A DNA stretch of 64,000 bases, taken from assembly GCA_977020255.1 (NCBI GenBank), contig CDROCS010005599.1, forward strand, positions 1 to 64,000, in the 5' to 3' direction. Shown in pieces: positions 21,188-57,875 of the stretch. A model generated the notes under the pieces. That model worked only from the letters and a program-made list of their open reading frames with translations. It made no database searches and was not told where the DNA came from. This DNA comes from Obrimoposthia wandeli (lineage: Eukaryota). Position 1 is the first letter of the stretch; each line of letters begins with the position of its first letter. The position numbers and the translations under genes are program-made.

Positions 21188-21385
21188 CAAATCAAGCTTT
21201 ATGCCGCTAAAAGGAGACTAACAAAAATGCGTATTCAGCTGTCGATTAATTGACTTCATAAGTTAAAGAATAATGCTGCAACCTTTTGATATTAATATAC
21301 TAAAATATTTTATTTTCGATATACTCGACGCGCTTTTCTGTCGTTTAGATAGGGATTGGAATAATTTAATAATCAAGGATGTTAC

Positions 21386-21904
21386 ATGAAAAAATTAATC
21401 ATTAGCGGCGCTGTTTACGCTTTACTGAGTTCTCCTCTAGTACTAGCCGCTGAAGATCATGGAGTTTACGTGGGCGCCTCAGTCGGGCGTATGTCAATAG
21501 ATTTTGACGAAGCAAGTGTTAGCGATAAAACAACTAATGCTAGTAAACTATTTTTGGGTTATAACTTTAATCCATATTTTGCGCTAGAAGGTTCTTATTA
21601 CGATACATCTTCCTATAAACTCAATAATGATACCACCGCTGAAATCAGTGGATTTTCTGTGGCAGTATTAGCAGGTTACCCAATAAGCGAACACGCTAAA
21701 GTGTTTGCCAAGTTAGGTTATATAGATGGTAAAAGTGAGTGGGAAGACTCTTCAGTAAAAGGCACTTTGGATAGAAACTCAGTACTCTACGGTATAGGCG
21801 CTAGCTATAGCTTTGGAGACTTTGCAGTTCGTGCGGAGTACGAACGAGCGAAAGATGAAGATGCTTTGGATATATATACATTAGGTCTACAGTACAGTTT
21901 CTAA
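21386..21904 (+). CDS. Outer-membrane beta-barrel protein (OmpA-like transmembrane domain)
   Basis: Signal peptide, GYNFNPYFALEG, alternating strands, C-terminal LGLQYSF. Confidence 0.88.
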   Translation: MKKLIISGAVYALLSSPLVLAAEDHGVYVGASVGRMSIDFDEASVSDKTTNASKLFLGYNFNPYFALEGSYYDTSSYKLNNDTTAEISGFSVAVLAGYPISEHAKVFAKLGYIDGKSEWEDSSVKGTLDRNSVLYGIGASYSFGDFAVRAEYERAKDEDALDIYTLGLQYSF

Positions 21905-43988: not shown

Positions 43989-44064
43989 TGCGCATTAATT
44001 TGACAAGTGATAACCAACAACTGTCAGTATAAATATGGTTTTCGGGTAATTGAAGTGTAGGGAC

Positions 44065-44679
44065 ATGTATATGCTAGCAGCATTTTTGCAGTTAGGTTTA
44101 ATGGCAGTTTTATTGATAGGTGCGCCTGGACCCGCAGCGATGGCGCTTATTGCGACAGGCTCCTCTAGCCGTTTTCGCCAAGGGCTGCCCTTAATTATCG
44201 GTTTAGTTGTAGGCGTTCTCTTAACTGGCCTATTAACTAATATTGGAATGTCAGCTCTATTAAGTCGTTGGCCAGATGCACGATTAATCATGCAGATTAT
44301 CGGCGCTGTGTTTATTCTCATTATGGCGATAAAACTAATTCGTCCGCCTCCCATAGGAGCTCTTGATACAACTCAGATTGTATTTGGGTTTAAATCTGGG
44401 GTTTTGATGAATATTCTCAATCCTAAAGCTTACGCCGTGTTTATGTTACTTATCTCCAAATTCATGCCAGCGTTAAGCACAAAGCTTTTATCAATCATCA
44501 TGCTTGAAATGGTAACGTCGCTCGCAACGATTACTGTCGGTTTTGGATGGTTGCTCGTTGGTCGGTTTTTAGGACGTATCGCCAATAGCTCTAATGGGGA
44601 GAAATACATTCGATTTATCTCGGCTGGATTAATGATAGTTTTTGTTATGCCAATCATTATCTCTATGCCTAGTCATTAA
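44065..44679 (+). CDS. LysE/RhtB family translocator
   Basis: APGPA motif and G..MNILNPKAY; six hydrophobic segments. Confidence 0.88.
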   Translation: MYMLAAFLQLGLMAVLLIGAPGPAAMALIATGSSSRFRQGLPLIIGLVVGVLLTGLLTNIGMSALLSRWPDARLIMQIIGAVFILIMAIKLIRPPPIGALDTTQIVFGFKSGVLMNILNPKAYAVFMLLISKFMPALSTKLLSIIMLEMVTSLATITVGFGWLLVGRFLGRIANSSNGEKYIRFISAGLMIVFVMPIIISMPSH

Positions 44680-45095
44680 TTTAAGGCGTTATAAATAGAT
44701 AATGCTTATGGTTAATAGTGGATTAGCTTTTATATGTATTTCAGTGGCGAGTTAATCAAGATTAAATAACGATATCACAGTAATCGGCATTAAGTGTTGT
44801 TACCGGAATAAAAGAACTGGCATTATTGGCGTAAAATTGTGCAGGGCCTTTTCGCCTTCCATAAAAGGTAACAATGCTGATATATTTTTAAAAATATTAC
44901 CATTGTTAGCTGTGGCGACGGAGTGAAAATGGCAATAAGTTACGTCAGAATTTCTCAAAAATTATGCAGGTAAAAAGCTATCGAGTAAGAATCATAAAAG
45001 TAATCATGTATTATATATACGGCAGCTAGATGAGACCAAACTAGCCACCACGTCATAATTACTTAGCGGCAGGTGTGTATCGCAGGTACGGATGT

Positions 45096-46040
45096 TTAAG
45101 ATATCTTCTCATATTTAGATGAATTTCTTCCTTGTTGCTTTACCGCGTACAATAAACGATCAGCTTCATTCAAAATGGTTGACAAATCAAGTCTCAAATT
45201 TGGCGTTACATTAACGGCGCCAACACTGATAGATAAGTTCTCAGATACATCACTACTCTTGTTTTCTAAGTTTAAGCTCAGTACTCGCTCTGTCATTTCA
45301 TTTAAAACAGACTGTATGTCAATTTTCCCAGCATTAGGAAAATAAAAATAAAACTCCTCACCGCCACAACGATAGACTTCGCCATTATACTCATATAGAC
45401 ACCGTTTTAAGACGCTAGAAATCAGTCTTAAAGCAGTGTCGCCCTTCTGGTGACCATAAGTATCATTATATCCTTTAAAGTAGTCGATATCACAAATACC
45501 AAATACTAGTGAGGTTTTCGTTATTTTAGCTTCTTGCCATATCAAAGCAGAATCTAGATCCCATTTTCTTCTATTTGCTAACTCAGTCAGGCTATCAATA
45601 TTCGCAATGCGCTCTAATAGCTTTCTTTGACGCACCAGTTCTATGTGTGTATTGACACGAGCTTTGACAATACTGTGATGAAAAGGTTTTTGTATATAAT
45701 CGCAACCACCAAGTAAAAGTCCTTTCTCTTCATCTTCTACACTCTGTAGCCCTGATATAAAAATAACAGGAATATGATTAATAGTGGGATTGTTTTTCAA
45801 TTCTACAATCATTTCAAATCCAGTCATGCTCGGCATTATTACATCTAGTATAATAAGGTCAGGTTGTAATTCGACTGCTTTTGATAAGCCTGCATAAGCA
45901 GATTTAGCTAAAAAAATAGTATAGTCTTGGCTAAGTATAGAGCTTAATACTTTTAAATTATAACTTTCATCGTCAATACAGAGAATACTGAACTCTAATT
46001 CACTGCCTCTGCGTTTTTTAATTATATCGCCGCTATTCAT
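45096..46040 (-). CDS. Response regulator diguanylate cyclase (REC-GGEEF)
   Basis: REC with LDVIMP; DIDYFKGYNDTYGH and RCGGEEF; no RxxD I-site; starts 1 nt after the hybrid kinase stop. Confidence 0.93.
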   Translation of the reverse strand: MNSGDIIKKRRGSELEFSILCIDDESYNLKVLSSILSQDYTIFLAKSAYAGLSKAVELQPDLIILDVIMPSMTGFEMIVELKNNPTINHIPVIFISGLQSVEDEEKGLLLGGCDYIQKPFHHSIVKARVNTHIELVRQRKLLERIANIDSLTELANRRKWDLDSALIWQEAKITKTSLVFGICDIDYFKGYNDTYGHQKGDTALRLISSVLKRCLYEYNGEVYRCGGEEFYFYFPNAGKIDIQSVLNEMTERVLSLNLENKSSDVSENLSISVGAVNVTPNLRLDLSTILNEADRLLYAVKQQGRNSSKYEKIS

Positions 46041-46041
46041 T

Positions 46042-49000
46042 CTATCTTCCGATTATTGATTTTTCTAAGTTATCTAGTTCTACAGTAGCTGATTCAAATT
46101 CAAAATCACAAATCAAATAATGCACATTACTAATTTGCTTTTCATACACAGTGCCTCTAGATAAATCATGTAATGACCATGAAACGCTTTCAGAAGCCGC
46201 TTCAGCTCTCGCTAATAATAGTCTAAGTTGATTGATTAATAGTATAGCAGCTGGGTAATTTAATATTTTATCAATTTCACTTTTTTCTGTTTTTGCGAAC
46301 AAAGGTGATAATTGAGAAATTATTGAATATAGCTCTGATAATAAATCAGATACTTGGATGGGGGTTATTTTCTGATGTTTAGTAGACTCTTGCAAAACTG
46401 ACGCATATTGCGCTAATTTGTTTGCTCCAATATATTGCGCTGTAGATTTCAGAGAATGAGTGATTAAAAATAATTCATCATATTCATTCGCATCTAAATA
46501 TTTTTCTATTTTTTCATATAAACACTTATTCTTAGTCCAAAAATCTTTAACTAGTGACAAATAAAGACTCGCTTTATTCTGTAATCTATAGATTGATTTG
46601 TCTACTTCTAATTGCTCTATATTATAAAGATATTCAAGAGTTTTTTTCTCTATCTCTAATGTTTCAAAGTCGACTAAAACAGGAGGTCTCTCTAATTTTT
46701 TTTCTATGTTTAATAATTTAGCCAATGTGTGATATAAAATATCTGGATCAATCGGTTTTGTTATATGGGCATTCATACCGGAATCAAAACTTAATTCTAC
46801 ATCACTTCGTAAAGCATGTGCTGTCATTGCTATAATAGGTAATTGTTCTTTATTAAAGTTTTTTCTTATTTCTTGCGTAGCAGTGATACCATCCATAACA
46901 GGCATTTGAATATCCATGAGGATACAGTCAAAACTACTTTGTTCTACTTTATGTATAGCCTCTCTACCATTTTCTGCGATAGTGACATTAATCATGGTGT
47001 CCATTAAAAAGCCTTGAGCAACTTGTTGATTAATTTCATTATCTTCTACCAATAATAGGTGGTAATCACTTAAATCAGGAGGAGTAACCTCTTCCTTTAA
47101 TGTAGTCGTAGCTAAACGGGTATCTTTTTTACCAAACATTAGTACATTGATATTATCTATTAATGAAGAGGCATTTAATGGCTTTTCTATAAAACTTTTA
47201 ATCTCAGTGTTACTTGCCAAGGCCATTGCTTCATTTTTATCATATGCCGATATCATAAGCATGAAAGGTGTTGCTCGATTAGACTTCGCTGTTATTTTTT
47301 TACATGTCTCTATACCGTCTAACTGTGGCATTTTCCAATCCATGATAACCAAATCAAAAGGCTCATCAATTTCATCGGCTATTTCAAATCGTCTAATTGC
47401 TGCAAGACCGCTGGTTTCACTTTTAGCTGAAATTCCGAATGATGAGAGTACATCCAATATGACTTGTATTGCTGTTTCATTGTCATCTACGACTAATACA
47501 TTCAAGTTACTTAACAGTGCTAGATCAATATATTCGGTACTATCAGCGACTATATTTGCTGGTCTAAATATAGCATTAAACGTAAAACAAGAACCTTTAT
47601 CTTTAATACTAGTTGCCCGTAATTCGCCGCCCATTAATTGAGCTAGCTCTTTACTAATAGCAAGGCCTAAACCCGTACCACCGTATTTTCTTGTGGTGGA
47701 AGCATCCACCTGATAAAAAGAAGAGAATAGCCTTTTTTGTTCTTCTTCTCCTATACCGATACCTGTATCCATTATCTCGAACACAAGATCATGACCTTGA
47801 TCTACAGAGGGCCCAGAATGTATTGAAATTTTGATAAAGCCTTCATCGGTAAATTTAACTGCATTATTTATTAAATTAACCAATATTTGTTGAAGTCTTA
47901 AAGGGTCACCAATAAGTAGCATAGGGATGCTACGATCAACCTCTATAATGAATTCTAGGTCTTTCTCATATATAATTTGTCCGCAAATAGCGGTTACTTT
48001 CTGTAAAACATCATCTAAATTAAATTTTATTCTTTCGAGAGATAATTTATGCGCTTCTATTTTTGAAAAGTCCAGAATATTATTAATCAAACTTAATAGG
48101 GAATCAGATGAATCAGATACTTTACTAACAAGGCTTTGCTGCTCTATAGACAAAGGTGTTCTTTTAAGAAGTCTATTTAGGCCTATAACTGCATTCATCG
48201 GTGTACGTATTTCATGACTCATATTCGCTAAGAAGTTTGACTTAGCGATCGTTGATTCTTCAGCCTTTAACTTAGCAGAGGCTAACGCTTCTGTTCTTGC
48301 TATTACTCTCTTTTCTAAACTTTGATATAAAAAGGCATGTGAAAGCGATATAGCTGCCTGAGATGCTATAACATTCAATAATGAAATATGCTCTTGACTG
48401 AATGCATTTTCAATTAAGTCATTTTCTAAGTAGACAACGGCTATCATGTTACCCTGATGAATAACCGGTAATCCAGCGACTGTTAAAGGTGACTTACGCT
48501 GAAAATAAACATCATGATAAAATTCAGTGTGTTCAAAAGGTCTGTTAATAATACATAGTTCTTGTGAATCAATGACGCGTTTAACGATACTTTCGGGGAT
48601 TTTTTGTTTTGTAGCTGCATCGATCAACGGTTGATGTAATAACACGCCAATATGATCTTTGTCACCAGCAGCTTCAAGCCATAATTCTTTATTAATATCG
48701 TTTGTTTGTATCAATGCACCCCAGCCAGCGCCCGCATTTTTCAACAAAATAAACATCAGTTTCTCTAATAAGCTATCTAAGTGTATTTCACTAGAAATCA
48801 AAAGATTGATGTCTTGAACCGTTTGTAAGTTTATCGAGTCTTGTGGCTTATAAATTTTATTAAAAGAGTGATCGTCAATAAAATTAATATTTGACCAATA
48901 TTCTCTTAGTTGCTGTAGTTTAGTAATAGCACCCCACTGTCGGTATTCTTGATATGAAACAGTGATGAAGGTTTTAGCTAATACATATTTATTTTTAGCA

Positions 49001-52000
49001 TGCCAATAGTTAGCAAAACATTCATTGCAGATGGCCAATATATTATTAAAACCGCTATTGGACGCTTCTTCTATGGCTCTGCTATATAAATCAATTATTT
49101 GAGTGTCATTACCACACACTCTGTCCGACTCTGCTTTTAAAAGTAAGTATTTATGCAGATAATTGTGTGGGCAAGCTTCAGACCACTCTTCGAACATTGC
49201 CAGCTTAGCCTGTGATAGTAGAAATAATGGATCATTTTCGTTATCAGCAAACCTTAAAGCAATGAGTGCTGCGAAAAAAGTAGACTCTGGTATTTTATTT
49301 TGACCTGGTACTGATGCCGAGATTAGTTCTGCCTTTTCCAATAAAGATAATTGTATATTTTTCGACGAGTTGGTTAAATATGCATGTCGTAATTTAGCAT
49401 TATAAAAATAGCCTAAATGTAATGGAGCATGTTCATAGTTTTTAAGAAAAATATTTTCGTTGAAGTCATCATCATCAAAACTATCTAAAGAATGGGTCAA
49501 ACCCAATAAGGCCTTAACTGATTGTAGTGCGCCAACTGTAACGCAGTCTTTCATATCTAACTGCTTATGTTTACTTAATAATTGAATATCATCTGTCAAT
49601 GTTTCATGTACGGATTGTAGTTTTTCGCCTAATGCTAATGTATCACTACCTCTCACAGCACATATATAACCAAGTGTGGCTAAGTCACCAGACTGTAATG
49701 CAAGGTCATAGCTCATATTATAGTAAGGAACTGTTTTTTGTAGCGGATGATTCCAATGCTGAGTAAATGTCGCGTATAAAAAGTATGTGCTTGCTTTAAT
49801 CAGTTTGTTTTTTCTATTCTCAGCCAGTTTAACCGCAAGTAATCCAAATTTGTCCGCTTGTTTATAACGATTATATACGCTGATAATTGCTAATGAATAA
49901 TTAACATAGGCGAAAGGAGATATATCATCATGGCCATGCTCTAAAGAAAGCTGTGTCATTATAATAGTGGATAGTAAGTTCAGAGGAGTTTTACCGCTAA
50001 GATAGCTAGCGTACCACATTCCCATTAAGAGTTTCATTGCCGCTTTTTGGTTATCATTTTCCATTGAACTATGATCTATCAAATCATCAATATTATGGGT
50101 TGATATGAAACTATCTATTGATTTAAACCCTTCCATGAACTGTGCTTCAATCTCTGTTGTATCATCTGGTATTCGTATGCTCAAAACGCCAAGGCCTTTC
50201 TTTTGTAAGGCTATAGCCTCAGCGAATCGCCCTTGAATTTGATACTGAGCAGTTTGAATAGCAATCACTGATACGATTTCTAACGCAGTATTGGCCACTT
50301 TCATTGCTTGTATATACAGTTTCTCAGCTAGCTCAAAATCACCGATTAAATAACTTACCTCCGCCAGTGTATTAAACACATCCAAGCGACGATAGTCTAA
50401 ATCCTCACACGAAAACTGATAAACATTAAGCATAGTTTTTTGTGCATACGTAAAGGCGGTTGATCTTTTCGCTTTACGGGCAGCCAGCAGATTAAGATCA
50501 ACAAGTACCTTCTTTTCATTGATGCTGGCATAATATTTACCTGCATTCAGTTGATCTGTAATTTCGAATATATTACTTTCTAGATTTTCTTTGAGAGTAC
50601 CTTTTAATAATCTCATACCAAACTGCCATTTGAATTCCGCCAAATGCTCTTGTGGAATTAATTGGAAGGCAGCTTGTTGTACTCTATCGTGAAGGAACAT
50701 AAAACTTGCCTGTGATAGCAAGTCTTCACTGCTCGAAAATCTGTAGTTTTCATTCACTGGAAGAATATAACCGTTTGATATCATCGGCCATAATCGTTTA
50801 TAAACGTCTTGTAAACCAAGGTGGGCAACTTTTTGTAACTTTTCCAATGAAAATTGGTTACCTAAATTAGCCGCAAGCTTTAAAATTTCCAAGCTTTCAT
50901 TCGAAAATTTCTTCAACTTATCAATCATAAGATCCACAATGTTCGAAGTAACATTTACCACGTCTATTGCTTGTTGATCCCAGTGCCAAGCACCTTTTTC
51001 ATAGGAATAAAAAATATATCCCTCTTCATTTAGCATTGTAATGAACTGATTAACGTAAAATGGATTTCCCTGTGTCTTTTTAATACAAGTAGCGGCAAGC
51101 GGCTCGGCTTGATCTAATGTTAACCATAAACTATCAGCTAGTAATCTTTTAATGTCTTGTAAGTTAAGTGGATGTAAATGAATTTCACCGAACTTTATTT
51201 TTTTTGATTTTAAATCTCGAATGATTTTTGATAATAAATGTGTTTCATCTATTTCATTATCTCGATAGGTGCCAATTATCATTAAATAAGAATTTTGATC
51301 AAGCAGTTCGTTTATCAATCTAAGGGAGGCGGTATCTGCCCATTGCAAATCATCTAAGAAAATGACTAAAGGATTATTTTGCGAGGTGAATGCGTTGACA
51401 AATTTAACAAATGTCATCATGAACTGGCGGTCACTTACTAGGGTATTCTGCTCTGGGGATGTTGTAATTTTTGTATCAAAAAAAGGTGCTAACTCGGGGA
51501 CTAATTCTGTTAATAGAGTAAAGTTTTCACCTATTTTGGTTTGAAAAATATCTCTCCACTTGTTTTGTTGATCATTTTGTAAATTTGAAATTTGCCGCAG
51601 TAGTAAGCGTAAGGCTTGTGAAAAAACATAAAATGGTTGATCCGTACTAAATTGTTCGCATTTGCCGGAGGTGAATAGCCCTTTGTTTTCACTGATTTTC
51701 TTTTGTGCTTCTTTTATAAGTGCCGATTTTCCTACGCCAGAATAACCACTGACGAGAACAATTTTATTTTGTCCAGAGGCTACTATTTGAAATCCGTCCA
51801 TTAACTGCGATATTTGTTTTTCTCTACCGTATAGTTTTCTTGATAACTGTAATTTTTCAGGTGAATCTTCTTGCCCTATATCGAAATGCGATATTTCGCT
51901 CGTTTCCAGCCATTCTTTTTCTATTCGTTTGAGATCCTGTAGTAGACCAAAACTACTTTGATAGCGATTATTTGGAGATTTTTCTAGCAAACGAGCAACT

Positions 52001-52719
52001 ATTTCAGACGCTTTTTGCGCAATGCTGCTATCTAGTTCATAGAGTGGTTTAACTTTTTGTGTGAGTTGTTTATAAACAATCGATAGTTGATCTTGTTCAC
52101 CATCAGCATAAATTTGTTGTCCACTAAATACTTCATATAAAGTGGCACCTAAAGAGTATAAATCACTGCGGTTATCTGTCGGTAAATTTGAGCGGCCAGT
52201 TTGCTCAGGCGAAGTATAAGCGGCTTGGCCTATTAGTATATTATTTAAAGATGATACTTCATCTTGCTGTAATTTGGTGGCAAGCGAAAGATCTACTATT
52301 GAAATATTACTGTCATTTTTCGATATAAAAAATGCATGTGGGTTAATATTTCTATGTAATAAACCATTAGTGTGTAGATAATGAACAGCTTCGGTCATTA
52401 AAGTTGCAATACGTAGTTTTTCACTAAATGTCGTTGGATTCTGTAATCTGTCCGACAAAAGATCACCGCCATTATCCTCATATATTATGGCACTATGGTA
52501 GTCTTCAGTATTAAAAGATAGCGCCGATAGTACTTTTGCTGGGTCCAGCGACCTAGTCAGCTCATATTCCGATTTTAGCTCCGCATTCATGTAGCGGTTA
52601 GATGACATTTTTTTATTATATTTTACTAGAACTTTTTTACCACGGTTATCACAAGCTCTGGCTAAGCTTGCTTTGTTACATGATTTAAGAACCTCTAGTA
52701 TCTTAAAATTGGCAATCAT
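46042..52719 (-). CDS. Giant hybrid sensor: Ser/Thr-kinase-like domain, AAA/STAND ATPase, helical repeats, GAF, HisKA, HATPase, REC, REC, Hpt
   Basis: HRNINP/DLS/SPEQ kinase-like motifs; Walker A SGYSGVGKS and FLDDLQWAD; GAF (YLENDL); H-box FLANMSHEIRTPMN; GGTGLGLAI; two REC domains (MDWKMP, MDIQMP); Hpt HSLKS. Confidence 0.93.
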   Translation of the reverse strand: MIANFKILEVLKSCNKASLARACDNRGKKVLVKYNKKMSSNRYMNAELKSEYELTRSLDPAKVLSALSFNTEDYHSAIIYEDNGGDLLSDRLQNPTTFSEKLRIATLMTEAVHYLHTNGLLHRNINPHAFFISKNDSNISIVDLSLATKLQQDEVSSLNNILIGQAAYTSPEQTGRSNLPTDNRSDLYSLGATLYEVFSGQQIYADGEQDQLSIVYKQLTQKVKPLYELDSSIAQKASEIVARLLEKSPNNRYQSSFGLLQDLKRIEKEWLETSEISHFDIGQEDSPEKLQLSRKLYGREKQISQLMDGFQIVASGQNKIVLVSGYSGVGKSALIKEAQKKISENKGLFTSGKCEQFSTDQPFYVFSQALRLLLRQISNLQNDQQNKWRDIFQTKIGENFTLLTELVPELAPFFDTKITTSPEQNTLVSDRQFMMTFVKFVNAFTSQNNPLVIFLDDLQWADTASLRLINELLDQNSYLMIIGTYRDNEIDETHLLSKIIRDLKSKKIKFGEIHLHPLNLQDIKRLLADSLWLTLDQAEPLAATCIKKTQGNPFYVNQFITMLNEEGYIFYSYEKGAWHWDQQAIDVVNVTSNIVDLMIDKLKKFSNESLEILKLAANLGNQFSLEKLQKVAHLGLQDVYKRLWPMISNGYILPVNENYRFSSSEDLLSQASFMFLHDRVQQAAFQLIPQEHLAEFKWQFGMRLLKGTLKENLESNIFEITDQLNAGKYYASINEKKVLVDLNLLAARKAKRSTAFTYAQKTMLNVYQFSCEDLDYRRLDVFNTLAEVSYLIGDFELAEKLYIQAMKVANTALEIVSVIAIQTAQYQIQGRFAEAIALQKKGLGVLSIRIPDDTTEIEAQFMEGFKSIDSFISTHNIDDLIDHSSMENDNQKAAMKLLMGMWYASYLSGKTPLNLLSTIIMTQLSLEHGHDDISPFAYVNYSLAIISVYNRYKQADKFGLLAVKLAENRKNKLIKASTYFLYATFTQHWNHPLQKTVPYYNMSYDLALQSGDLATLGYICAVRGSDTLALGEKLQSVHETLTDDIQLLSKHKQLDMKDCVTVGALQSVKALLGLTHSLDSFDDDDFNENIFLKNYEHAPLHLGYFYNAKLRHAYLTNSSKNIQLSLLEKAELISASVPGQNKIPESTFFAALIALRFADNENDPLFLLSQAKLAMFEEWSEACPHNYLHKYLLLKAESDRVCGNDTQIIDLYSRAIEEASNSGFNNILAICNECFANYWHAKNKYVLAKTFITVSYQEYRQWGAITKLQQLREYWSNINFIDDHSFNKIYKPQDSINLQTVQDINLLISSEIHLDSLLEKLMFILLKNAGAGWGALIQTNDINKELWLEAAGDKDHIGVLLHQPLIDAATKQKIPESIVKRVIDSQELCIINRPFEHTEFYHDVYFQRKSPLTVAGLPVIHQGNMIAVVYLENDLIENAFSQEHISLLNVIASQAAISLSHAFLYQSLEKRVIARTEALASAKLKAEESTIAKSNFLANMSHEIRTPMNAVIGLNRLLKRTPLSIEQQSLVSKVSDSSDSLLSLINNILDFSKIEAHKLSLERIKFNLDDVLQKVTAICGQIIYEKDLEFIIEVDRSIPMLLIGDPLRLQQILVNLINNAVKFTDEGFIKISIHSGPSVDQGHDLVFEIMDTGIGIGEEEQKRLFSSFYQVDASTTRKYGGTGLGLAISKELAQLMGGELRATSIKDKGSCFTFNAIFRPANIVADSTEYIDLALLSNLNVLVVDDNETAIQVILDVLSSFGISAKSETSGLAAIRRFEIADEIDEPFDLVIMDWKMPQLDGIETCKKITAKSNRATPFMLMISAYDKNEAMALASNTEIKSFIEKPLNASSLIDNINVLMFGKKDTRLATTTLKEEVTPPDLSDYHLLLVEDNEINQQVAQGFLMDTMINVTIAENGREAIHKVEQSSFDCILMDIQMPVMDGITATQEIRKNFNKEQLPIIAMTAHALRSDVELSFDSGMNAHITKPIDPDILYHTLAKLLNIEKKLERPPVLVDFETLEIEKKTLEYLYNIEQLEVDKSIYRLQNKASLYLSLVKDFWTKNKCLYEKIEKYLDANEYDELFLITHSLKSTAQYIGANKLAQYASVLQESTKHQKITPIQVSDLLSELYSIISQLSPLFAKTEKSEIDKILNYPAAILLINQLRLLLARAEAASESVSWSLHDLSRGTVYEKQISNVHYLICDFEFESATVELDNLEKSIIGR

Positions 52720-53631
52720 CGTAATATTTCCAAATTATCCCAAGAGAGTATGCTTTTTATTATAGTTTCAGGGCATAAATCAATATTTTTCCCTCATCGC
52801 TTTTTGCGTATTTAAGAATAATCGCAGCATAACGGGAGATCATTAATAATACGGCGCTGAAGTTATGATTTTTATGGGAATCTCGAGTGTATTAGATTCG
52901 AGAGACCTTGGTGCTTTGTAGCGTTAATGGTGAAAGCCTCTCTAAACTTAGATGAGCCCTAGTTCCATAATAATATTTCTTAAAAGCCTATATGAACGTA
53001 TAATTAATTTCGATGTTTTCAAACGCTTTGATAATAATATAACTCTGACTAAGAAAAATAAATTCTTACAAATATATGTTTTTATTGTTTATTTACAAGT
53101 AGTTGAGATTTTTCATGGATATTTACATCTATCGTAAAATAGCAGTTACTAAACAGTATATCCAGCTTCTCTAGGATATTTTTCTTCTCTTAGCGTCGAA
53201 AACAGTTTCGTTCTTATTAATATGTAACTCCATATCAATTTAGCTGCTTGGTTTAGTCGTTATAAAAGGCTAGACCCTGGAAGAAGAGTTTTCTGGTTTT
53301 GATAGGGTACTATTGTTGGAGTGGCTAATAAGGTTTGTTCTCTCAATGTTTATAAGCACAACGGCTACTCGTCAAAATACGTATTTAGCAAAAAATGATG
53401 GAATCTAACCTTGGAAAATTCATAATTTTAATTGTTGTCCAACACAGATAGTGGTTATAGCTATTATTCATTAGCAGCTTTGGGCAAGGTAGATAGTATG
53501 AGCGCTCAAGGACCTCGTTTGCTTACACGACCGGGCAGTTCCTGCGCTTATCTTGAACCTTTCATTGAGGGGATACTTCATGGTACTTGAGTTACGCGCT
53601 GGATCTTCACGCAGTCCTTTGGACAATGGTG

Positions 53632-53667
53632 TATCTATCTATCTATCTATCTGCCTGCCTATCCATC
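53632..53667 (+). repeat. Tetranucleotide microsatellite (TATC)5 plus degenerate units
   Basis: tatctatctatctatctatc-tgcc-tgcc-tatc-catc. Confidence 0.8.
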
Positions 53668-53669
53668 TA

Positions 53670-54176
53670 GGCGTTAGTGCATTACTCTGTTCCCTGGCAG
53701 GATAAGCGTTAGCCAATGATTGTGTGAACTCAATCACTGCCTTTTTAGAGGCGGAATAAGTCGATACTATACTGGCATCAAAATTACTTAACATGAGGGG
53801 GGCTGTTGATGCCGCTTTTGTTTAAAGTAAACTTGGTGCGTGCACTGCTACAAGAGCTGATTGCCCCATTAAAATTAATATATCAAAAATATAACAGGCT
53901 TTGATCCTTCTCTGTATTTCAGCACACCTGGGGGATTTATAAACAGCTAAATGGAAGACGATCGTCTATTCGCTATCTCAATTTACTGCATATCAAATAC
54001 GTTAACTTGTTTGAAAGTGATGTTGTCGGTTTTATTAGATGGCTCAACTAGACCTATTGCCATGGCTTTATAATTTGCAGCGGAGAATCCTCTGGTTAAG
54101 AGAGATCTTTACCAATAGCTCCTCCACCGCTAAACGCTATTTTAGTTGCGTGCTAGGTAAGTTGATCAATGATCAT
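53670..54176 (-). pseudogene. Degraded short-chain dehydrogenase (SDR) remnant at the end of the cupin operon
   Basis: Hand translation finds ordered fragments with stops and frameshifts: MIIDQLT*HATKIAFSGGGAIGKDLS, KQVNVFDMQ*IEIA, I*LFINPPGV, YSASKKAVIEFTQSLA...SNALTP. An RBS precedes the ATG at 54176. Confidence 0.6.
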
Positions 54177-54191
54177 GTAATGCTCCCGCTC

Positions 54192-55394
54192 TCAGTTTTC
54201 TTTTGCTTCTATTGGGCTTGTGCCTGTAGGATTTCTAAAATATTGATCGAGCCTTGCCAATGCTTGATCTAGTATTTCGGGAGTTTGGGCGAAACATAAT
54301 CTAAACCAACCATTACTGGGTGCACAGAAGGCTTCACCAGGGGCGAGACCTACTTTGGCTTCATTGATTAGCATTTGTGAGAAGGCGATTGCATCTTCTA
54401 CTTCAGGGATACGAAAGAAGGCATAGAAAGTTGACTCTATTTTTGGGCACTCCACCTTTGGGTACTTAGCTAGCGTACTTTCAACCTTTTCTTTCGCTAA
54501 GCGATAGTTCTCACAGCTGTTAGCGATAAAATCTTCGCCTTGTTCAAGTGCTGCAACAGCGGCACGTTGTGAAAAGGGAGGGGCGCAGGCAATGGAAAAT
54601 TCAGCAATTTTCTCGATGGTTGGTACTAAACTTTCGGGCAAAGTTAACCATCCCAAACGCCAGCCGGTCATGGCCCAACTCTTGGAGAAACTATTGACGA
54701 CTAGTAATTTATCTTCCGGTTGTGCCACTTGCAAAAATGAAGGCGCAACAGAATTGTCAAAAGTAGTTCTGCTGTAAACTTCATCTGCGATTAGCCAAAT
54801 ATCGAGGCGGCGCAATTCATCAAGTACACGACGCTGTTGTGCAGTGTTCATTGTCCAGCCAGTAGGATTCGAGGGGGAGTTTATCAGCACTACCTTTGCC
54901 TGGGCTGCTTTGGCAATGAAAGCATCGATATCCAGAGACCATTTGCCATCGACTATATCCAGAGAATGCGTGATCAGCTCTGCGTTCTGCAGCTGTGGAA
55001 TACGCAATAAATTAGGGAAAGCAGGGATTATCGTTGCGACTTTATCACCAGGTTGGAGCAGTGATTGAAATGCTAGATGCAGGGCATTCCCCCCAGATAC
55101 AGTAACTGCGATACGCTCGCTACTGATAGGCATATCGTAAAGCTCGCTTGTGTACTTGGCGATCGCCTCACGCAAGAAAGGACGGCCCAATCCTTCAGAG
55201 TAAAAAGTTTCACCGTTTGCCATTGCCTGTGCGGCGGCCTCACAGATGAAGCTGGGTGTCGGCTGATTTGGCTCACCAAACCACAGCGGGATAAGCCCTT
55301 CAATCCCCATGGCTTTATTTGCCAGCACACGGGTGATTGATGGTGGGACATCAATCGCATTTGACTGAAGATGATCGCTGGCTCGTTTTGTCAT
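54192..55394 (-). CDS. PLP-dependent aminotransferase class I/II
   Basis: FGEP, INSPSNPTG, ADEVY, NSFSKSWAMTGWRLGW, GLAPGEAF, WFRLCFA. Confidence 0.93.
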   Translation of the reverse strand: MTKRASDHLQSNAIDVPPSITRVLANKAMGIEGLIPLWFGEPNQPTPSFICEAAAQAMANGETFYSEGLGRPFLREAIAKYTSELYDMPISSERIAVTVSGGNALHLAFQSLLQPGDKVATIIPAFPNLLRIPQLQNAELITHSLDIVDGKWSLDIDAFIAKAAQAKVVLINSPSNPTGWTMNTAQQRRVLDELRRLDIWLIADEVYSRTTFDNSVAPSFLQVAQPEDKLLVVNSFSKSWAMTGWRLGWLTLPESLVPTIEKIAEFSIACAPPFSQRAAVAALEQGEDFIANSCENYRLAKEKVESTLAKYPKVECPKIESTFYAFFRIPEVEDAIAFSQMLINEAKVGLAPGEAFCAPSNGWFRLCFAQTPEILDQALARLDQYFRNPTGTSPIEAKEN

Positions 55395-55444
55395 GGCAGG
55401 GTCTCTATTGTTATTTGAGTGGAGGCTCTTTGTCTTAATGTCGC

Positions 55445-56170
55445 TTAATAAGTAGCGCGGCCACCTGAGAGATCAAACACAGCACCACTATTAAAAGTAC
55501 AGGCGCCGGAGCATAACCACAGCACCATTTGTGCCACTTCAGCTACTTCACCGAGGCGTTTCATTGGCGATTTGTCGATCATTATTTGCACGTGCTCAGG
55601 GCTCATTTGCTGTAAAATACTGGTATCTACCGCAGCGGGGGCGAGGCAATTAACGCGGATGTCAGTCATTGCCAATTCTTTGCCAAGTGACTTAGTCATC
55701 GCGATGATACCGCCTTTTGCCGCACTATAAGCCGATGCATTGGGTGTGCCTTCTTTGCCTGCAAGGGAGGCTAAGTTGACGATTCTACCGTAATTTTGTT
55801 GCTGCATTATAGGCACCAATGCACGGCTGACTTTGAAAGCTCCGACTAAATTAACGTCGATAATACGCTGCCACATATCGATGTCGTATTCGGTCAATGG
55901 CATGGTAGGTCCAGTAAAGCCGGCACTGTTGATTAAAAAGTCAATCTTGCCAAAGCGGGCTTCTAACGCGTTAGCTGCCGCACTAATTTGCTCATTATTG
56001 GTTATATCGACAGCGAAATACTCATCATCGGCAACTTTACCCTGCTGCATATCCCAGACGGCAACTGTTGCACCAGCACTGCGTAATTGTTTGGCAATAT
56101 CGGCGCCTATACCATTGGCACCACCTGTGACGACCGCGACACGGCCAGAAAAATCATAACTAATATCCAT
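55445..56170 (-). CDS. Short-chain dehydrogenase/reductase
   Basis: TGGANGIG, INSAG, YSAAKGG, VNCLAP. Confidence 0.95.
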   Translation of the reverse strand: MDISYDFSGRVAVVTGGANGIGADIAKQLRSAGATVAVWDMQQGKVADDEYFAVDITNNEQISAAANALEARFGKIDFLINSAGFTGPTMPLTEYDIDMWQRIIDVNLVGAFKVSRALVPIMQQQNYGRIVNLASLAGKEGTPNASAYSAAKGGIIAMTKSLGKELAMTDIRVNCLAPAAVDTSILQQMSPEHVQIMIDKSPMKRLGEVAEVAQMVLWLCSGACTFNSGAVFDLSGGRATY

Positions 56171-56218
56171 AATTCTCTGCTCTACAAATCAACTTTATCT
56201 GGAGGAAGAACTGCTGCA

Positions 56219-56478
56219 CCTACTTCTTAGAAGTGCCAGCGGTACCTGTCTATCTTGGTAAATACGTCTTCGTAGCCCGTGGGTTTATTGTAGGGGCCGT
56301 ATCTTAGAGGTCACATGGCGCCTAGCGAATAAACTGCTTAACGAAGTCCGCTCCTAAGCCTACTTCTTCGAAGTGCTTGCGGCACATGTCTATTTTGGTA
56401 AACACGTCTTCGTTTCAAATGACGCTATCCGCACTACTGTCTTGCGGCACATGTCTATTTTGGTAAATACGTCTTCGT
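56219..56478 (-). repeat. Three copies of the cupin gene 3' segment
   Basis: 38-bp direct repeats at 56376-56413 and 56441-56478 (1 mismatch) flank a 27-nt unique insert; a degenerate copy of about 80 bp lies at 56219-56298. Confidence 0.9.
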
Positions 56479-56914
56479 AGCCCATCGGTTTACCGTAGGG
56501 GTCTACGTAGCTCATGACACCATTAACTTGGAACAATGTGATCATCTCATCGACATCATCCGGTACCACTAAAGTGTGAGTTTCACCTGGCGGCTCAAAC
56601 ACATAGCTGCCCTCAGTCGCTTCCCAATCGTGTTCTAAGTAGTGCCAGCGGCCTTTGAGGACAAAGCCGTGTACTGGGTTGGGATGACGGTGACGCGATA
56701 GCACACCGGATTTAGTCACTTTGAGTAAGTTGACCCAATATCCTTGAGATGCATTGAGACAAAGTGGGCGGAAGTAGACATTCTCTGTTTGCTTAACCCA
56801 CATCCGGTCATCTTCTGGAATGGCGTGGGGAATGACTATCTCTGGCAAGGCATCTTGTGGCATTGCATATTGATAGGGGATACGAGGGTTATCTTCCTTT
56901 TCCGTAACGGGCAT
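56322..56914 (-). pseudogene. 2,4'-dihydroxyacetophenone dioxygenase (DAD) family cupin, frameshifted near the C-terminus by a 65-nt insertion
   Basis: RHRHP...GRWHYLEHDW...EPPGETHTL. The native tail HFEEVGLGADFVKQFIR* (stop at 56322) is out of frame with the ORF that ends at 56390. Confidence 0.8.
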
Positions 56915-56945
56915 GGCGTACTCTCAAGGTTGCTATTTTATTTAA

Positions 56946-56966
56946 AATGTCCATAATGTGGATATT
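56946..56966. promoter_or_regulatory. Candidate IclR operator
   Basis: AATGTCCA-taatg-TGGATATT inverted repeat (7/8 pairs) between the divergent cupin and IclR genes. Confidence 0.5.
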
Positions 56967-57107
56967 ATTCCATTTAATGATAATTATGTTAATTTCTCCA
57001 GCAGCTAATAGCAATACTTCCTGCTAATTTTTTATGAGCTGTTATGATGCGGGCGCGCTTTAAAACGTATTAGTGCTAGTTAAAAGGAATGTATTGGAGA
57101 ACAGACA

Positions 57108-57875
57108 ATGTCAGAAGTAGTGCAGGGGGCGAAGAGCTTCTCGCGCAGTATCAGTGTATTGCAGCTCATCGCAGATAGTGCTCAACCTGTAGGTGTCGCC
57201 CAGCTGCTTGAAGTAAGCGAGCTTACTCGGCCAACACTCTATCGTATTCTAGCGGCGCTCGAACTCGAAGGGCTAGTGCTGCAGAACAGTGATAAACGTT
57301 ACCAGTTGGGTAGTCGGGTGATTTCACTGGCGCACCGTGCATTGGCGCAAACGGATATCCGTGATATCGCGCGTACTGCATTAGAGCAATTGCGTGATAC
57401 CTTAGGTGAAACGGTTCACTTGGCAATTCGCAATCGCGATGAGTTGGTTTATGTCGATAAGATAGAGAGTCGTGAAGTCGTACGTATGGCTTCTACCATC
57501 GGGACGCGAGTGCCTTTTCACAGCAGTTCGGTGGGTAAAGCCTTTCTCGCCGCACTAGATATATCACAGGCAGAAGTACTCATCGATGGCTTACCGATGT
57601 CATCGATTACCGAGCACAGCGCGACCGATCGAGAAAGTTTGAAACGTTACCTAGGGCAAGCGCGCCAACAGGGATATGCTTTTGAAAGTGAAGAGAACGA
57701 AAAGGGAATCGTTTGCTTTGGTGCTGCCATTTTAAATGCCCAGCAACAGCCGATAGCGAGCGTCAGTGTCAGTGTGCCGATGTTTAGGTTAGCGGCAGAT
57801 CACAGTCAATACTCAGCGGCATTGTTGGCGGCTTGCGAAGCTATTTCGCGTCAGTTGGGATATGTCGCAAAGTAG
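57108..57875 (+). CDS. IclR family regulator
   Basis: LTRPTLYRILAAL HTH; GETVHLA, SSVGKAFLA, CFGAAI, SVSVSVP. Confidence 0.95.
   Translation: MSEVVQGAKSFSRSISVLQLIADSAQPVGVAQLLEVSELTRPTLYRILAALELEGLVLQNSDKRYQLGSRVISLAHRALAQTDIRDIARTALEQLRDTLGETVHLAIRNRDELVYVDKIESREVVRMASTIGTRVPFHSSSVGKAFLAALDISQAEVLIDGLPMSSITEHSATDRESLKRYLGQARQQGYAFESEENEKGIVCFGAAILNAQQQPIASVSVSVPMFRLAADHSQYSAALLAACEAISRQLGYVAK

Follow-up and report, generated by a model that had tools for sequence, protein, structure and literature searches.

A putative phosphorelay linking a pseudokinase-STAND hybrid histidine kinase to a diguanylate cyclase in a low-GC block of an Oceanospirillaceae contig

Contig CDROCS010005599.1 (assembly GCA_977020255.1), of which positions 1 to 64,000 were analyzed (this whole 64-kb stretch is referred to here as the window), contains an AT-rich block that carries two adjoining genes on the minus strand, one encoding a 2225-aa hybrid histidine kinase and the other a 314-aa diguanylate cyclase. 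The locus raises the question of what kind of signalling system these genes encode, whether the kinase acts on the cyclase beside it, and how so AT-rich a pair came to lie at this site. We favor, with a probability of roughly 0.65, the reading that the two genes form an operon encoding a cytoplasmic multistep phosphorelay, the last step of which is the synthesis of cyclic di-GMP (c-di-GMP), and that this operon was acquired from a lower-GC relative of the same order. The pair had previously been described from the letters of the sequence alone (the original prediction); the open reading frames (ORFs) and domains lie where they had been placed, while the interpretation given to them is supported in part.

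The proposed combination of a kinase-like domain, a STAND ATPase, a GAF domain and a hybrid histidine kinase in a single 2225-aa protein is borne out by Pfam domains (Table 1). The histidine-kinase core has an H box with His1502, an N box (NAVKFT) at residue 1619, a G1 box (DTGIG) at 1651 and a G2 box (GTGLGL) at 1681. It is followed by two receivers, of which the second (residues 1889-1998) is the better-scoring Response_reg stretch, and by an Hpt domain. As His1502, Asp1794, Asp1936 and His2088 are all present, a full His-Asp-His phosphorelay is contained in one protein, as had been anticipated. This protein is predicted to be soluble because no 19-residue window of it reaches a Kyte-Doolittle mean of 1.6, and in both the kinase and the cyclase the hydrophobic stretches are too short to form a transmembrane helix. 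A His-Asp-His relay in one polypeptide that passes phosphate to a separate response regulator is familiar from kinases of the BarA/GacS, ArcB, TorS and LuxQ type. These unorthodox kinases are membrane sensors with periplasmic or PAS input, whereas the protein encoded here is cytoplasmic, has two receivers and would take its input through pseudokinase, STAND and GAF domains.

The product of the second gene consists of a receiver and a GGDEF domain. Its acceptor Asp66 and the block DIDYFKGYND are conserved in an alignment with six orthologues, and GGEEF is found at residue 226; by these residues the active site is intact. This layout, a receiver with an acceptor Asp and then a GGEEF cyclase domain, is that of PleD and WspR, and the best NCBIfam match is the PleD family (176 bits, compared with an equivalog cutoff of 474). 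In contrast to PleD, the protein has one receiver instead of two and no RxxD inhibitory site, the I-site position (five residues before GGEEF) being occupied by EYNG. GGEEF occurs in all seven cyclases compared, while RxxD is missing from six of them (those of the window and of loci L001, L003, L085, L086 and L087) and is found only in L004, as REMD. The suggestion that synthesis is "feedback-free" is uncertain, as it is drawn solely from the missing RxxD, which many GGDEF proteins also lack.

A single base separates the TAG that ends the kinase gene (46044-46042) from the cyclase ATG at 46040, which has GGAAGA just ahead of it. The original prediction of a REC-GGEEF partner located 1 nt downstream and lacking an I-site is confirmed by these positions and by EYNG. 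A REC-GGDEF gene (314-322 aa) directly follows the kinase gene in 7 of 7 related loci (L001, L002/L003, L004, L085, L086 and L087, with kinases 73% to 32% identical to that of the window). In addition, relatives of approximately 1680 aa (P0076, P0098 and others) carry the kinase-like, AAA_16, helical and GAF parts at the same spacing, fused directly to GGDEF. Conserved adjacency combined with direct fusions is commonly taken as genomic evidence that two functions are linked, and at the level of sequence these findings support a conserved kinase-cyclase coupling with c-di-GMP as the output of the sensor module.

It could be argued that the relay has outputs besides the neighboring cyclase, or more important than it, and that the Hpt domain feeds other regulators or the protein serves as a phosphatase or phosphate sink, with c-di-GMP as a side branch. 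The presence of two receivers and an Hpt domain permits branching, and Hpt domains can serve several receivers, a point that also counts against a single output. Furthermore, kinase and cyclase have not diverged in step: relative to the window proteins, the L087 cyclase is 52% and the kinase 33% identical, while in L004 the order is reversed (38% and 45%), which hints at partner exchange or unequal rates. However, adjacency has been kept in all of the related loci, even where the kinase is only 32% identical, a gap of 1 nt is compatible with co-translation, and the sensor-GGDEF fusions belong to the same family. Based on these observations, a branched output of this kind appears improbable.

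The sensor half of the kinase is built around an ATPase with intact Walker A (GYSGVGKS, residues 325-332) and Walker B (VIFLDD, residues 452-457) motifs, the residues of which are invariant in 60 relatives (alignment A1: G46, G49, G51, K52, D177 and D178). A sequence search of this region against the PDB gave no matches to any solved structure. An AlphaFold2 model of residues 280-800, built on the 60-relative alignment, has a mean pLDDT of 90.4 and predicts helical and winged-helix parts after the P-loop core and then the first helical repeats. In a Foldseek search of the PDB, the top matches (probability 1.00) were the STAND-TPR protein PH0952 (6mfv), Avs3 (8dgc), Apaf-1 (1z6t, 3sfz) and MalT (8bob, TM by target 0.65), and the next were CED-4, plant NRC proteins and ORC/Cdc6. 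MalT, PH0952, Apaf-1 and Avs3 have the same succession of a P-loop core, helical and winged-helix parts and helical repeats as is predicted for the window protein. This fold search agrees with the STAND nature that had been assigned to the ATPase, and as modelled it is a STAND module. The output here would be a histidine-kinase phosphorelay, instead of the DNA binding, caspase recruitment or nuclease activity found among these STAND proteins. The arm between the STAND core and the GAF domain appears to be TPR-like: the model is helical up to residue 800, and TPR_12 gives a weak match at residues 781-843 (E-value: 5.8e-4, below cutoff). Relatives carry PF25503 (TPR_CHK1) in the arm, and on the window protein this family gives no match within E 0.01.

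The rank of Avs3 as the second-best structural match of the STAND core brings up the alternative that the module is an Avs-like sensor of phage proteins, and that the pair serves in defence or alarm, with c-di-GMP rising when the cell is infected. In its favor, the block looks acquired, and PADLOC kinase models (PD-T4-6, mad6 and PglW) match the kinase-like domain. Four points make such a role very unlikely. First, the PADLOC matches span the generic kinase fold only, and no Avs or other STAND defence model was matched. Second, the matches to MalT, Apaf-1 and PH0952 equal or surpass the one to Avs3. Third, the protein has no nuclease, protease, TIR or pore effector domain. Fourth, the genes that neighbor the pair in its relatives are metabolic (ADC-like protein, flavoprotein, ABC transporter) or housekeeping genes (gmk, rpoZ, spoT) and do not form defence islands.

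At the N-terminus of the kinase there is a domain with a Hanks-type kinase fold (Pfam Pkinase; PknB alignment). The fold of the Ser/Thr "kinase-like" domain of the original prediction is thus present, but its catalytic residues have been lost. The Gly-rich loop is missing, the catalytic loop reads HRNINPHA (residues 122-129), with Asn124, Asn126 and Ala129 in place of Asp, Lys and Asn, and DFG is replaced by DLS (residues 143-145). When the domain was aligned with HMMER to PknB of M. tuberculosis, an active kinase of solved structure (3f69), the same substitutions appeared at each of these positions. The VAIK Lys33, the helix-C Glu51 and the DFG Asp143 have been retained, and therefore nucleotide binding is possible, while phosphotransfer is not expected given the residues that were lost. 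M. tuberculosis PknK also joins a kinase to a MalT-like region, but its kinase domain is active, unlike that of the window protein.

The N-termini of 38 relatives were aligned and compared for the same kinase motifs. No family member has the Gly-rich loop. Distant members (from cyanobacteria, Beggiatoa, Desulfobacterales and others) mostly keep HKDIxPxN together with DFG or DFS. H/I-R-N without the loop Lys and Asn, combined with DLS, is limited to the window protein and its 13 nearest relatives, and the kinase-like domain has degenerated independently in other clades (P0017-19, P0021/22 and P0056). The named members of the 14-member HRN/DLS clade are all Oceanospirillales. Judged by these motifs, the N-terminal domain is a pseudokinase, and it may bind a ligand or partner, or hold the switch off.

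From these parts, the following course of signalling can be proposed. In MalT, Apaf-1 and Avs-type STAND proteins, a ligand or partner lifts autoinhibition, ADP is exchanged for ATP and the protein self-associates. By analogy, some cytoplasmic ligand or protein would bind the sensor, release autoinhibition, allow ATP to replace ADP and lead to self-association. This would bring the histidine-kinase cores together and result in autophosphorylation, which in histidine kinases takes place in trans within dimers. Phosphate would then pass from His1502 to Asp1794 or Asp1936, from there to His2088 and finally to Asp66 of the REC-GGEEF protein. Phosphorylation drives the dimerization of PleD and WspR, and in the same manner the phosphorylated cyclase would dimerize and make c-di-GMP, with no product inhibition at RxxD. 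We infer the ligand-driven oligomerization, the phosphotransfer route and the activation of the cyclase, as well as the direction and timing of the transfer discussed below. A compact soluble system of two proteins with a measurable c-di-GMP output could show how a STAND module and a pseudokinase control a histidine kinase.

A word-based protein search returned at least 7993 matches to the kinase at E ≤ 0.001. The kinase-like-AAA_16 module occurs in every one of the best 120 of these, almost always together with GAF; the output is a histidine kinase in most of the 120, often combined with Hpt, and GGDEF in a smaller number. These 120 proteins come from Oceanospirillaceae, Marinomonas, Burkholderiales, Desulfobacterales, Beggiatoa, Chloroflexota and cyanobacteria. 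Exact look-ups of the kinase, cyclase and aminotransferase sequences of the window found no identical record. The closest relative among the 120 (P0001, 73% identity) is from the Oceanospirillaceae metagenome-assembled genome (MAG) 9NakV-11. Other Oceanospirillaceae MAGs and the Osedax symbiont Rs2 follow at 54%, Marinomonas sp. MED121 and allies at 44-45%, and Marinomonas balearica, Marinomonas spartinae, Rheinheimera, Burkholderiales, Desulfobacterales, Beggiatoa, Chloroflexota and many cyanobacteria at 26-35%. In a maximum-likelihood tree of 41 full-length proteins, the window kinase and P0001 are grouped with a support of 100, inside a fully supported 14-row clade that is exactly the HRN/DLS pseudokinase group. 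This distribution places all of the nearest relatives in the host's own order.

The architecture is found in thousands of bacterial proteins, and by its sequence the window protein is a member of a known, widespread family, within the pseudokinase subclade. A literature search found no studied bacterial family member outside the cyanobacteria, and we know of none. The earlier statement that such hybrids are known mainly from cyanobacteria and fungi describes where they have been studied and not where they occur, as the best matches span many bacterial groups. A 2005 survey had already listed family members in Leptospira, Ralstonia, Rhodopseudomonas and Pseudomonas (PMC1262709).

The window protein belongs to the bacterial dual protein kinases (HstK type), with a COG3899 ATPase core. 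Like it, the dual protein kinases of cyanobacteria (cbSTKIII: HstK/Alr2258 and Pkn40/Pkn41 of Anabaena PCC 7120) possess an N-terminal Ser/Thr-kinase-like domain, at least one GAF domain and a C-terminal HisKA-HATPase; the expression of HstK varies with nitrogen source, and Pkn40 and Pkn41 are induced by iron deprivation (PMC2176072). Four cyanobacterial proteins (P0086, P0095, P0097 and P0120, from Trichocoleus, Lusitaniella and Nostoc) show 30-31% identity to the window kinase over 82-85% coverage (E-values: 1e-252 to 1e-261) and fall in the same tree, in a different clade. The window protein differs from the cyanobacterial dual kinases in the addition of two receivers, an Hpt domain and a REC-GGDEF partner gene. 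Moreover, HKDIKPxN is retained by most cyanobacterial members (of the four compared, only Nostoc P0097 is degenerate), whereas the window clade has lost the Asp, Lys and Asn.

Among fungi, S. pombe Mak2 and Mak3 are group X hybrid kinases. Candida albicans Chk1, of the same group, resembles the window protein in having a Ser/Thr-kinase-related domain, GAF, histidine kinase and REC, and group X kinases act in oxidative stress and morphogenesis (PMC4965123). The helical arm of the fungal Chk1 family is the source of the name TPR_CHK1, the Pfam family that relatives of the window protein in bacteria also carry. Unlike the window protein, the group X kinases are eukaryotic, do not lead to c-di-GMP and depend on Ypd1 as a stand-alone Hpt protein.

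The composition of the two genes sets them apart from the rest of the window. Their GC contents are 0.344 (kinase) and 0.351 (cyclase), and the GC contents of their third codon positions (GC3) are 0.266 and 0.283, respectively. The 47 other ORFs have a mean GC of 0.467 (SD 0.032) and a mean GC3 of 0.458 (SD 0.059). The pair are the lowest two of 49 ORFs in both measures (z -3.0 to -3.9, with the other long ORFs of the 64-kb window as background), and GC is lowered at all three codon positions. The AT bias that had been noticed by eye is accordingly clear against the window background. In 2-kb windows, GC is 0.33-0.36 across the block and 0.45-0.48 on both sides. A block of 44700-54190 had been proposed; its low-GC core is confirmed by composition profiles, while 53400-54190 has a host-like GC of 0.38-0.46 and does not belong to it.

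The flanking genes indicate that the host is a member of the Oceanospirillaceae, near Neptunomonas and Amphritea. The block is bordered by a LysE-family gene (44050-44679) on one side and the aminotransferase gene (54192-55394) on the other. The SSADH encoded on the left flank shares 83% identity with that of Neptunomonas and 82% with that of Amphritea, while metagenomic proteins reach 91-92%. On the right, the IclR, cupin, short-chain dehydrogenase (SDR) and aminotransferase genes encode proteins that are 69-88% identical to those of two Oceanospirillaceae MAGs, in which they are syntenic. A 174-aa protein of this cluster matches ChrR-type Cupin_7. The next best relatives of the aminotransferase after the MAGs are from Alphaproteobacteria (Pseudovibrio and Roseibium, 61-64%), and so the cluster may itself be mobile. 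In both syntenic MAGs, an MCP gene follows the aminotransferase gene where the window has the block; the 1.47-kb gene-free stretch between the kinase and aminotransferase genes (52720-54191) contains neither MCP-gene remnants nor DNA similarity to those relatives. The closest copy of the pair, in 9NakV-11, has unrelated neighbors and is on a different contig from the syntenic genes. At the DNA level, this copy (L001) is similar to the window (74-76%) only from the kinase start codon to near the cyclase stop. The pair is located at a different site in every genome examined.

The horizontal acquisition put forward in the original prediction is probable, given the composition of the pair, a GC3 that does not follow the host offset of shared orthologues, and synteny that ends at the block. 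Four shared orthologues have a GC3 that is 0.075-0.20 higher in the window than in 9NakV-11, while that of the pair is 0.01-0.02 lower. Distant orthologues of the pair match the GC of their hosts (L002/3: 0.45 and 0.46; L004: 0.38 and 0.39), which indicates that the kinase and cyclase genes are not AT-rich by nature. The sequences point to a lower-GC relative of the same order or family as the probable source, and not to a cyanobacterium: every one of the nearest relatives belongs to the order of the host, and so the transfer would have been between related lineages. As genome biology, this would be an ordinary case of a signalling cassette moving between related marine bacteria.

Several observations weigh against transfer, and some of them speak for vertical inheritance within the Oceanospirillaceae lineage, with an AT-richness that is gene-specific (due, for example, to weak expression, to relaxed codon selection or to a protein rich in Lys, Asn and Ile) and local rearrangements that broke synteny. 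Identity to the 9NakV-11 proteins is 73% for the kinase and 78% for the cyclase, within the 69-86% of four neighboring orthologues from this MAG, so that the protein identities alone also fit vertical descent. In 9NakV-11 the pair is again AT-richer than its flanks (GC3 of 0.29 compared with 0.36 +/- 0.03 for the surroundings), and so the genes themselves may account for some of the bias. Scans of the window ORFs, tRNAs and repeats found no integrase or transposase, no tRNA anywhere in the window and no boundary repeats at the block; of the classical features of a genomic island, only atypical composition and broken synteny are present. The lack of mobility genes and the placement of all close relatives in the host's order also speak for vertical descent. 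Nor was a syntenic empty site found in the nearest relatives, because these are non-syntenic over the whole 32-54 kb part of the window. L005 and L011 (aminotransferase 81-82%) and L088 (SSADH 91%) were considered as sources of an empty site and rejected, as they are not syntenic across the block. However, the GC3 of the pair is approximately 0.19 below the window mean (z about -3) with all three codon positions lowered, shared orthologues rose with host GC and the pair did not, and the host-like GC of the L002/3 and L004 copies and the changing location of the pair also count against this reading. We regard vertical inheritance as possible but unlikely, and acquisition from a lower-GC relative as the better reading.

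The sharp GC shift on both sides of the block, in a window that comes from a mixed collection of contigs, could also be produced by a chimeric assembly of two organisms' DNA. Against this, independent contigs of the best-covering sequencing run, which probably represents the source sample, span 51500-55500, and thus the right junction, with equal depth (9.7-9.8) on both sides. The only irregularity in these contigs is a bubble of 77 nt (53333-53409), where two alleles differ at 53363 and 53379, which points to strain heterogeneity in that sample. Host-like DNA flanks the block on both sides within the contig. In addition, parts of 51550-53574 recur in three runs from other studies as short pieces, none of which differs at more than two bases (approximately 99% identity or more); they cover the kinase 5' end and the AT-rich leader. 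The stretch was found in no RNA run. Judged by the right junction and the flanking DNA, a chimera is extremely improbable, and none of the four alternatives (branched output, antiviral sensing, vertical inheritance and chimeric assembly) fits as well as an acquired phosphorelay operon with c-di-GMP as its product.

The best lead to the signal comes from genes that precede the kinase gene in relatives, where a conserved pair encodes an ADC-like protein (327-344 aa, with a weak PF06314 match) and a flavoprotein of approximately 710-718 aa (Table 1). L086 has only the flavoprotein gene, which is oriented divergently there. An NAD_binding_8 domain is found in the flavoprotein, which weakly resembles desaturases and oleate hydratase, is 33-87% identical between loci and gave no matches in a sequence search of the PDB. 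The window is without both genes, and no remnants of them were detected in its 1.47-kb gene-free stretch (tblastn gave nothing better than E 8). For this reason, the description of the circuit as "self-contained" is uncertain: the kinase-cyclase pair of relatives is usually accompanied by the ADC-like and approximately 715-aa flavoprotein genes, without which it would have entered this Oceanospirillaceae genome. A tentative and rather doubtful extension is that the pair is a mobile c-di-GMP switch, the ligand of which is made or consumed by the ADC-like protein and flavoprotein in relatives (54% to 32% identity), and that the window copy is an orphan receptor for a metabolite of other pathways or cells. 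If true, this would be an uncharacterised route from a small molecule through a STAND switch to c-di-GMP in marine Gammaproteobacteria.

Other surroundings of the pair were also noted. At L087 (14706-19080), from a distant relative, it lies directly upstream of gmk, rpoZ and spoT, and a c-di-GMP module thus adjoins the gene of a (p)ppGpp enzyme. At L001 (7266-9131, MAG 9NakV-11), the kinase gene is preceded by one for a 621-aa protein, which matches nothing in Pfam or NCBIfam and does not resemble the flavoprotein found elsewhere.

Table 1. Coordinates of the features of the kinase-cyclase block, its flanks and the related loci (window positions unless a locus is named).
Feature	Position	Strand	Basis or remark
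Hybrid histidine kinase, 2225 aa, pseudokinase-STAND-GAF-HK-REC-REC-Hpt	46042..52719	-	Pfam and motifs
Pseudokinase domain, residues 23-254	51958..52653	-	Pfam Pkinase 2.5e-27, 96 bits (cutoff 31.7)
STAND nucleotide-binding oligomerisation module, residues 280-800	50320..51882	-	AAA_16 at 295-481, 1.3e-34; AlphaFold2; Foldseek
Helical (TPR-like) arm, residues ~801-1313	48781..50319	-	Between STAND core and GAF
GAF, residues 1314-1459	48343..48780	-	Pfam 34.6 bits, above cutoff
Histidine-kinase core, HisKA 1492-1556 and HATPase_c 1604-1714	47578..48246	-	71.7 and 99.8 bits, above cutoffs
Two receivers, ~1740-1860 (Asp1794) and 1889-1998 (Asp1936)	46726..47502	-	Pfam Response_reg 2.4e-43
Hpt, residues 2057-2124, His2088	46348..46551	-	Pfam 2.3e-06, above cutoff; motif HSLKS at 2088
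REC-GGDEF response regulator / diguanylate cyclase, 314 aa	45096..46040	-	Pfam GGDEF 6.9e-34, Response_reg 3.5e-20
Receiver of cyclase, residues 19-129, Asp66	45654..45986	-	Pfam
GGDEF catalytic domain of cyclase, residues 146-306	45123..45605	-	Pfam
Low-GC core of block	44650..53400		GC 0.30-0.37, composition profiles
AT-rich gene-free stretch 3' of cyclase gene	44680..45095		No terminator-like site or insertion-boundary repeat
Gene-free leader upstream of kinase gene	52720..53400		GC 0.30-0.34
Relic of SDR gene, 51 codons, YxxxK region only	53639..53794	-	adh_short E 2.4e-4, below cutoff; six-frame reading
IclR-cupin-SDR-aminotransferase cluster	54192-57875; L005:7401-11179; L011:7597-11185		
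ADC-like/flavoprotein loci	L003:6686-9873; L004:6766-9886; L085:736-3923; L086:5608-7752		

The DNA around the two genes contains few recognizable features. Sigma-70-like matches are found in the leader on the minus strand (53098-53071 and 52996-52967), at a frequency no greater than chance. Promoter and terminator scans are uninformative because the sites are no commoner than in shuffled sequence. The 1.47-kb stretch upstream of the kinase gene has no ORF of more than 77 aa, no Rfam match and no similarity to anything else examined, and the gene-free stretches hold no copies of other window genes. The SDR relic, which lies past the low-GC core and short of the aminotransferase gene, has surroundings of host-like GC and is possibly the stump of a gene that was cut on the arrival of the block. 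The only other low-GC3 gene of the window is a 179-aa ORF at 21365-21901 on the plus strand (GC3 0.296, GC 0.393).

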